Both the position numbers and the translations under genes were made by a program. The notes under the pieces are model-generated. The model did no database searches. It saw only the letters and a list, made by a program, of their open reading frames with translations, and was not told the DNA's origin. A DNA stretch of 63,853 nt, counting the filler, from Octopus bimaculoides (Eukaryota), in the NCBI RefSeq assembly GCF_001194135.2. It is 7 parts of 6 records of this genome, joined end to end, with 100 filler letters (N's around TTAATTAATTAA, not from the genome) between each part and the next. Parts side by side here need not be neighbours in the genome. Positions count along the whole stretch, not along the records: positions 1 to 12,139 come from NC_068988.1; 6 more parts are not named here. The stretch is one strand, 5' to 3'. Shown one piece after another: positions 1,612-1,854 of this stretch (positions within the stretch are counted from its first letter, which is position 1; each line of letters begins with the position of its first letter).

Positions 1612-1854
1612 TTATTGACATTTGCCATATATGGAAATAAAGACATCAGTCTTAATGTTCGGCTCACACTTTGTGCCTGCAACACAGGGGCAAGTAAACG
1701 GGGAGGGTTGTGTGGAACAACCGTTTCCGGCTTGAGGAATTGGTTTACAGTAGACACCATTCGAAGTGAACGAATCGACAACACAGCAATGGTTCGGTGG
1801 GCATTTTCCCGGGAAGCGATCTGACATATTACACACAGGCTCAAATGAAGAAAC
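1612..1854 (-). CDS. Terminal coding exon of a secreted 10-Cys prokineticin/AVIT-like (colipase-fold, toxin-like) peptide
   Basis: VSSFEPVCNMSDRFPGKCPPNHCCVVDSFTSNGVYCKPIPQAGNGCSTQPSPFTCPCVAGTKCEPNIKTDVFISIYGKCQ*. Cys spacing is C-x9-C-x4-CC-x11-C-x9-C-x8-CPC-x5-C-x15-C. A phase-0 acceptor tatCTAATtgaatcttttAG has a branch-point-like CTAAT, and AATAAA overlaps the stop codon. Confidence 0.8.
   Translation of the reverse strand, partial: VSSFEPVCNMSDRFPGKCPPNHCCVVDSFTSNGVYCKPIPQAGNGCSTQPSPFTCPCVAGTKCEPNIKTDVFISIYGKCQ

Follow-up and report, generated by a model that had tools for sequence, protein, structure and literature searches.

An unannotated exon on the minus strand of Octopus bimaculoides DNA (1854..1612) is probably the second and last of two coding exons in a gene for a secreted, astakine-type, cytokine-like ligand with the colipase/prokineticin fold. 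The exon lies in the first of the joined parts (positions 1 to 12,139, from NC_068988.1) of the window, i.e., the whole stretch of 63,853 nucleotides (nt) that was analysed. Judged by its reading frame, signals and homologues, 1854..1612 is the real and intact last exon of a small, presumably secreted protein with ten cysteines. By sequence comparison the exon is an unannotated member of a mollusc-wide family, that of the oyster cytokine-like factor CgAstakine, and not a new kind of molecule.

The terminal coding exon

Translation of the minus strand from 1854 to 1615 gave 80 sense codons, followed by a TAA stop codon (1614..1612); the product was VSSFEPVCNMSDRFPGKCPPNHCCVVDSFTSNGVYCKPIPQAGNGCSTQPSPFTCPCVAGTKCEPNIKTDVFISIYGKCQ. 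An earlier inspection of the window made without database searches (the sequence-only reading) had described 80 codons with 10 Cys residues, and the translation confirmed it; homology and a structural model also support this feature. The ten Cys residues were spaced C-x9-C-x4-CC-x11-C-x9-C-x8-CPC-x5-C-x15-C. The exon covered the end of the leader region, a few residues long, and the entire ten-Cys colipase-fold domain. Residues VSSFEPV preceded the first Cys (Cys1), and the N-terminal AVITGA motif of prokineticins was absent, as had been claimed. The predicted mature part comprised approximately 77 residues (8.3 kDa) with a near-neutral pI. The peptide ended without a tail, and it had neither a dibasic site for processing nor a C-terminal Gly that could be amidated.

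A TAG codon closed the reading frame directly upstream of the exon, and the AG of this codon (1856/1855) is the proposed splice acceptor. The 3' splice region (1855..1897, minus strand) included an interrupted T-rich tract (1889-1857) and a branch-like motif, tgactaac (1897-1890), whose branch A precedes the AG by 36 nt. The sequence-only reading had called this a clean acceptor with a branch point. The AG and the branch-like motif were indeed present, but the acceptor was only fair: by a crude polypyrimidine/AG score it stood at the 82nd percentile among AGs of the same strand, and a second in-frame AG occurred at 1841/1840 on the minus strand.

At the other end of the exon, a putative AATAAA polyadenylation hexamer, read from the sequence, overlapped the TAA stop (1611..1616, minus strand), again as first reported. 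Its position is consistent with a terminal exon, as in all mapped homologues. A candidate poly(A) cleavage site, CA at 1595-1594, was found 17 nt downstream of AATAAA; together with the GT/T-rich downstream element that follows it, tgtcgttgcctttttt, it spans 1577..1595 on the minus strand and was placed according to the usual metazoan poly(A) layout.

The Cys pattern C-x4-CC-x11-C-x9-C-xn-CxC-x5-C, even when loosened, occurred once in all six frames of the first part; 300 sequences simulated with a second-order Markov model did not contain it. Two other ORFs (open reading frames) overlapped the exon: one of 120 amino acids (aa) in another minus-strand frame (1536-1898) and one of 69 aa on the opposite, plus strand (1615-1824). 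Neither had a Pfam match or any sign of coding, and both are by-products of the stop-poor sequence of the exon.

Homologues and family membership

An exhaustive phmmer search of 1.84 billion (1.84e9) protein cluster representatives returned, besides the query, 42 proteins with E<1e-3, of which eight reached 1e-10 or lower. At the top was a protein with an E-value of 1.4e-16 and 51% identity to the window peptide. Forty-one of the 42 proteins were family relatives, while the remaining one (P0037) was rejected as an unrelated repeat protein. Other searches added no relatives: a word-indexed protein search with the peptide returned nothing beyond the ORF of the window itself (P0001), an exact look-up of P0001 in the assemblies index found it not on record, and phmmer against Protein Data Bank (PDB) sequences gave only non-significant matches (Bv8, E 6.6).

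The 41 relatives had a common architecture: a signal peptide, a few residues, the ten-Cys domain and often a Thr-rich tail ending in Gly. None of these homologues contained AVITGA. The family consensus was C..(8-10)..CPxGYCCVRDEFLxxxxYCKxxGxxGxxCxTxxSxxxCPCxxGLxCxPNIxxxxxxSxYGxC. Alignments showed that the window peptide fits the family spacing, C-x8-10-C-x4-CC-x11-C-x9-C-x8-CPC-x5-C-x14-16-C. The x9, x8 and x15 loops that the sequence-only reading had taken as departures from the prokineticin pattern are therefore real, but they are the norm across this mollusc family and not oddities of the peptide. All ten Cys residues and the motifs CP..CC, D27, YCK, PN and S.YG.C were kept in the window peptide, with S74 and G77 present. 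Against a family hidden Markov model (HMM) built without the window peptide, the peptide scored 85.2 bits; leave-one-out scores of family members ranged from 59 to 105 bits (median 91). A score within the range of the members indicates that the exon encodes a typical, undecayed family member.

The relatives came from gastropods (Littorina, Pomacea, Lottia, Nucella, Haliotis, Biomphalaria, and Batillaria) and bivalves (Crassostrea, Saccostrea, Dreissena, Mya, Mactra, Mercenaria, Mytilus, and Potamilus). Most were labelled 'uncharacterized' or 'hypothetical', and several were named 'Prokineticin domain-containing protein' in UniProt. The cephalopod homologues that had been looked for did not appear, in that no named cephalopod protein was among the relatives at E<1e-3 and all of the named ones were bivalve or gastropod. 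A literature search for prokineticins or astakines of octopus, squid or cuttlefish found none.

A neighbour-joining tree placed the window peptide with P0004 and P0005 in a clade (93 of 100 bootstraps) apart from the oyster clade. Like the window peptide, P0004 and P0005 end one residue past the tenth Cys (Cys10). The source of P0005 was a marine metatranscriptome, and this protein had a signal peptide (MFAVLSLCLVLAAQAFA...). P0004 was carried on contigs from sequencing runs SRR25158146 and SRR25158149. A search for papers that cite the runs behind these closest relatives found none. Outside the exon, no DNA similarity was found between the window and the contigs of this closest relative.

Other members of the family extended well beyond the domain. 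Long Thr/Ser-rich, mucin-like tails were seen in many of them (P0013, P0015, P0021, P0034, P0039, P0040, P0042, and others), and most of these end in [IV][IV]G or HG, a possible amidation or other C-terminal signal. Four members had cadherin-domain matches (best E 4.2e-7), one of them being named 'protocadherin gamma-A4-like'. The astakine-like domain thus also serves at the N-terminus of larger proteins.

Gene structure and intron position

Annotated homologues were mapped onto their own genomic loci for their exon layout. All four of the mapped homologues had a phase-0 intron, with the signal peptide in exon 1 and an exon 2 that continues to the stop. In Haliotis rufescens, an exon 1 of 26 codons (donor gtgagt) was followed by an exon 2 starting at cag/CAA (the slash marking the exon border), six codons before Cys1. 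Saccostrea echinata had an exon 1 of 22 codons (donor gtaaag) and an exon 2 starting at cag/GAT, nine codons before Cys1. The corresponding values for Biomphalaria pfeifferi were 28 codons, gtaagt, cag/GAT and six codons, and in Crassostrea angulata exon 2 started at cag/GAT, eight codons before Cys1.

The window acceptor was likewise in phase 0, seven codons before Cys1, with the stop in the same exon. In the closest relative (P0004/P0005; contigs L001 and L002) the productive junction, Q/AFAADISC, was also in phase 0 and seven codons before Cys1. The strongest argument for the proposed splice site at 1856/1855 is that the position of the intron is conserved, which also predicts a signal-peptide exon of 20-28 codons upstream on the minus strand. 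Within the window, tblastn for second copies or further domain exons gave low-complexity matches only.

The two contigs of the closest relative, L001 from run SRR25158146 and L002 from run SRR25158149, also showed a second splicing pattern. Positions 1-30 of L002 held the last ten codons of a P0005-type signal peptide (LSLCLVLAAQ) joined to a cryptic acceptor, cacag/tagtgttc, which was seen unspliced in L001 (about 100-125) and precedes the domain exon by ~780 nt. This junction puts a stop straight past the leader and looks like a non-productive splice isoform. A leader joined to an acceptor that is left unspliced in L001 indicates an RNA origin of the contigs.

Fold and superfamily

The family profile matched PDB sequences of Bv8 (4.8e-5), MIT1 (1.5e-4), Dkk2 (5.9e-4), the MIT-like spider toxin U33-theraphotoxin (6.7e-4) and colipase (1e-3), with the Cys residues in register. 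AlphaFold2, run on a 39-sequence alignment of the domain, gave a model with five short strands, a mean predicted local distance difference test (pLDDT) of 84.9 and a predicted template-modelling score (pTM) of 0.63. The top Foldseek match of this model in the PDB was MIT1 (E 1.5e-3, probability 1.00, template-modelling score (TM) 0.54). It was followed by Dkk2, Dkk1 (TM 0.63/0.66), colipase, Bv8 and U33-theraphotoxin, with unrelated folds far lower. On the evidence of profile and model, the domain belongs, as a divergent member, to the colipase/prokineticin fold superfamily. Five disulfides are predicted, for which the pairing C1-C4, C2-C5, C3-C7, C6-C9, C8-C10 would be expected from the colipase fold. 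The proposed prokineticin/MIT1/colipase fold was thus upheld by the family profile, and the structure prediction suggested as a check on it returned MIT1, Dkk1/2 and colipase among its best matches.

At the level of Pfam families the matches were weak. When each of the 42 aligned sequences (the window peptide and 41 others) was scanned singly at E<=1, matches were obtained to MIT_LIKE_ACTX in 24, Prokineticin in 21 and Colipase_C in 10. Among the eight relatives that were tabulated, the best scores were 19.9 bits for Prokineticin (PF06607; cut-off 21.6), 18.5 bits for MIT_LIKE_ACTX (PF17556; cut-off 27.5), and 18.4 bits for Colipase_C (PF02740; cut-off 23.7). Membership in the MIT-like atracotoxins was rejected, as the best relative was below the cut-off and the peptide itself had no match. 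Membership in the colipases was rejected as well, the similarity being at the level of the fold only. The window domain, which is without AVITGA, is outside the strict Pfam Prokineticin family.

Vertebrate prokineticins, Bv8 and mamba MIT1 (the AVIT family, PF06607) have the same ten-Cys, five-disulfide colipase fold as the window domain. The x4, x11, x9, CPC and x5 intervals that had been said to match those of prokineticins did so exactly (C-x4-CC-x11-C-x9-C and CPC-x5-C). The remaining loops differed: x9 vs x5 for the first, x8 vs about x17 for the middle and x15 vs x8-9 for the last. The window peptide further differed in having no AVITGA and in scoring under the Pfam gathering cut-off, and protostomes reportedly have no PKR1/2 receptors (PMC8398477). 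The C-terminal domain of Dickkopf, colipase and the MIT-like atracotoxins belong to the same fold superfamily, but Dickkopf proteins have two Cys-rich domains, including an N-terminal Dkk domain, whereas the window exon holds one. A Dickkopf gene was rejected since the exon encodes a single domain with its intron seven codons before Cys1, only a leader is found upstream in the relatives, and a search of the window brought up no further Cys-rich exon.

Link to the oyster astakine

The closest known proteins are CgAstakine of Crassostrea gigas (Li et al., 2016, cited in PMC8398477 and PMC9797820) and the other oyster 'Cragi-prokineticins'. CgAstakine is a cytokine-like factor that is reported to accelerate the proliferation of haemocytes, and primers for its quantitative PCR are printed in PMC9797820. 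The forward primer, GACACGAGTTGCCCCACC, encodes DTSCPT, and the reverse primer, read as its reverse complement, encodes SCSTV; these two peptides were found within P0026. At the corresponding Crassostrea angulata locus (L006, 6275-6381) the forward primer matched exactly at 6275 and the reverse primer, with one mismatch, at 6363, inside exon 2. The record, 'uncharacterized protein LOC128184567', is now tied to the studied cytokine by these primers. P0026 aligned with the window peptide end to end (36% identity, BLASTP E 3e-16). Since the CgAstakine primers map to P0026, the functionally studied oyster astakine belongs to the family of the window peptide.

The window peptide and CgAstakine both have ten Cys residues in register, a short x8 middle loop and a long last loop, and both are without AVITGA. 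Their gene layout is alike also, with a signal-peptide exon (predicted in the window), a phase-0 intron and one domain exon. They differ in that CgAstakine has a Thr/His-rich tail of ~25 residues with a final Gly, while the window peptide ends one residue past Cys10, and in that the oyster protein has CCAYDEFF and GLTC where the window peptide has CCVVDSF and GTKC. Function has been tested for the oyster protein only, and the window peptide falls in another clade of the neighbour-joining tree. The astakines of arthropods (crayfish and shrimp), after which the oyster astakine was named, are likewise invertebrate prokineticin-domain cytokines without AVITGA that promote haematopoiesis; no named arthropod protein was among the phmmer matches at E<1e-3.

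Prokineticin-like peptides have been reported in nearly all lophotrochozoan phyla (PMC6425005). Non-vertebrate astakines and prokineticins are without AVITGA, which is required for binding to prokineticin receptors (PMC8398477; PMC9756803), and no orthologue of these receptors is known in protostomes (PMC8398477). The beta subunit of ATP synthase has been proposed as the astakine receptor (PMC8398477; PMC9756803).

By homology with these proteins, the secretion, expression, target and activity of the window peptide can be predicted. An upstream exon of about 20-28 codons would supply the signal peptide. The peptide would then be secreted, and would fold into a rigid, disulfide-locked domain. 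Outside the cell it would serve as a cytokine-like ligand on haemocytes or their precursors and promote proliferation as astakines do, the putative receptor being the ATP-synthase beta subunit at the cell surface. It would not act via the prokineticin G protein-coupled receptors, because the AVITGA that these require is absent and protostomes are reported to be without them. The sequence-only reading had left the role between a venom or salivary peptide, a haemocyte cytokine and a neuropeptide; the presence of CgAstakine in the family is evidence for the haemocyte cytokine, and nothing was found for a venom or salivary role, nor for one in the Wnt pathway or as a lipase cofactor.

Search for the signal-peptide exon

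The predicted first exon was searched for by scanning for ATG-initiated hydrophobic ORFs that end in a phase-0 GT donor. Two candidates were found outside microsatellites, both of low confidence. Candidate A (2325..2401, minus strand) starts at ATG 2401 (or 2374) and has the donor TCT/GTGAGT at 2324; its product is MSGFCLVETMLELIVCACLCIYVSMS. It was the best candidate outside microsatellites, with a donor score of 5.0, above the 95th percentile, and the implied intron of 470 nt is of a size class found in the relatives. Against candidate A are an acidic N-region and its location inside a repeat resembling a tRNA-derived short interspersed nuclear element (SINE). Candidate B (7353..7406, minus strand) has an excellent Leu-rich signal core and the product MLCVLLLLLMLLLHVLFS. 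Its sole phase-0 donors were weak (GTCAAA at 7352, score -4.3; GTGTTA at 7364, score -0.3), and the implied intron of about 5.5 kb would run across three assembly gaps.

Weighing of the explanations

Several results count against a gene for an astakine-type ligand. No convincing signal-peptide exon was found in the 10 kb upstream, candidate A lying in a repeat and candidate B having poor donors, and six assembly gaps lie upstream of the exon within the first part. The Pfam scan of the peptide alone gave no match even at E<=10; the HMMER comparison with Pfam that had been proposed as a check therefore failed for the peptide itself, and the eight tabulated relatives were all sub-threshold. No protein more than 51% identical was present in the protein collection, which includes the Logan assemblies of sequencing runs, and identity to the only functionally studied member was just 36%. 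At conserved non-Cys sites the peptide departs from the consensus (CCVVDSF vs CCVRDEF; GTKC vs GLxC), and its activity may therefore differ from that of CgAstakine. As to the first exon, the six runs of N upstream mean that the true exon 1 may be unassembled; it may sit in an assembly gap or past the end of the first part.

The want of a convincing first exon would also fit a silent or recently dead gene copy, in which the exon is no longer spliced and its first exon or promoter has been lost or disrupted by repeats. A SINE-like element, a relic of a long interspersed nuclear element (LINE) and microsatellites fill the neighbourhood, and no transcriptome in the collection contained a near-identical protein. 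However, all 80 codons of the ORF are intact, with the ten Cys residues and the family motifs, and the peptide scores against the family HMM as working members do. The locus also has an acceptor, a branch motif and a poly(A) signal, and exon 1 may sit in a gap. A silent copy is on balance unlikely.

Similarly unlikely is another secreted role, such as that of an antimicrobial peptide, of a colipase-like cofactor, or of a peptide of the digestive gland or the neuroendocrine system. Surveys have classed the family among neuropeptide or hormone precursors (PMC8398477; PMC6425005), colipase was among both the profile and the fold matches, and the many paralogues with differing tails (some mucin-like, four cadherin-like) suggest several functions. 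Yet the sole direct functional data for the family concern haemocyte proliferation, Colipase_C scores were below the cut-off, and the peptide is without the tail, dibasic site or C-terminal Gly.

An MIT1- or MIT-like-atracotoxin-type venom or salivary toxin, produced by the posterior salivary gland and aimed at receptors or channels of the prey, is improbable. The fold class is common to mamba MIT1, the top Foldseek match, and spider U33-theraphotoxin; 24 of the 42 aligned sequences had weak MIT_LIKE_ACTX matches; and the separate short-form clade that the window peptide forms with P0004 and P0005 may reflect a shift in function. But these MIT_LIKE_ACTX scores were far under the cut-off (at most 18.5 vs 27.5 bits), and the AVITGA that MIT1 and Bv8 need at prokineticin receptors is absent. 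Bivalves without venom and grazing gastropods are the sources of the homologues, and the one member studied so far is a cytokine. The cephalopod venom literature that was searched made no mention of prokineticin, colipase or astakine-like components.

A chance ORF in AT-rich non-coding DNA, for which only the 45 ORFs of at least 50 aa in the window (many from microsatellites) could speak, was refuted by the absence of the pattern from 300 simulations, by phmmer homology at 1.4e-16 among 1.84e9 proteins, by the family HMM score of 85.2 bits and by the conserved intron position, and has next to no chance of being correct.

Significance

An astakine-type gene at this locus would matter chiefly for annotation and for cephalopod haematopoiesis. 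Eukaryotic annotation pipelines routinely miss secreted proteins that are small and rich in Cys, and no annotated protein matched the exon. The claim that pipelines often miss such peptides held for the family also, two of the five oyster transcripts being filed as non-coding (XR_) records. If the gene is a cephalopod one, it would extend the astakine family to a third class of molluscs and point to a candidate cytokine of haemocyte production in cephalopods, where haematopoiesis is little understood. The linkage to CgAstakine also helps to annotate dozens of 'uncharacterized' or 'Prokineticin domain-containing' mollusc proteins, in a family defined by the lengths of its loops, its motifs and the position of its intron. 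Descriptions of the fold, of the family and of a function for one member already existed.

A more speculative proposal, which is rather unlikely, is that the window peptide, P0004 and P0005 form a separate, tail-less, short-form branch of the astakines (CCV[VI][DE] in place of CCVRDEF), and that, given the octopus origin that the SINE-like repeat suggests, the exon would represent the first cephalopod astakine-type gene, perhaps with a lineage-specific role. If so, that role could be the control of haematopoiesis in the white body or that of an MIT1-like salivary toxin, and the gene would be missing from all annotations.

Repeats, gaps and other surrounding sequence

The tRNA-SINE-like element around candidate A occupies about 2260-2520 on the minus strand and consists of a head like an A-box and B-box (ggctgtgtggt ... 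gagttcagtccc), a TG/TA-rich middle and a ttagcggtt tail. It occurred once in the window and presumably resembles the abundant octopus SINE. This element and the wealth of gaps, microsatellites and repeats would fit an octopus assembly, and the confinement of the named homologues to molluscs fits a molluscan source. An ARAGORN scan of the SINE head found no tRNA, and a protein search with the ORF in the SINE frame returned no candidates. An Rfam scan gave only sub-threshold microRNA matches, which were microsatellite artefacts, and a scan for bacterial promoters and terminators was uninformative for eukaryotic DNA.

The LINE relic (about 9550-10350, plus strand) is a decayed reverse-transcriptase gene with stops and frameshifts across three frames. 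Two of its ORFs (9646-9912 and 9925-10143) carried reverse-transcriptase motifs (FVDDVII), and a weak match to RVT_1 (E 0.0039) was below the cut-off.

The six assembly gaps (runs of N) were located at 4401-4416, 5452-5959, 6636-7016, 9008-9051, 10539-11462 and 11917-11926. Several of them were flanked by (TA)n or (TG/CA)n microsatellites, and long artefactual ORFs with X and CVCV or YIYI peptides were seen there. Four tandem repeats were also present: a 14-nt unit repeated 6.9 times (4-104); (TGA)x44 (264-395), which yields an Asp-rich ORF of 148 aa at 88-534; (AAT)x25 (6466-6540); and a 60-nt unit repeated 2.1 times with 87% identity (8734-8859).

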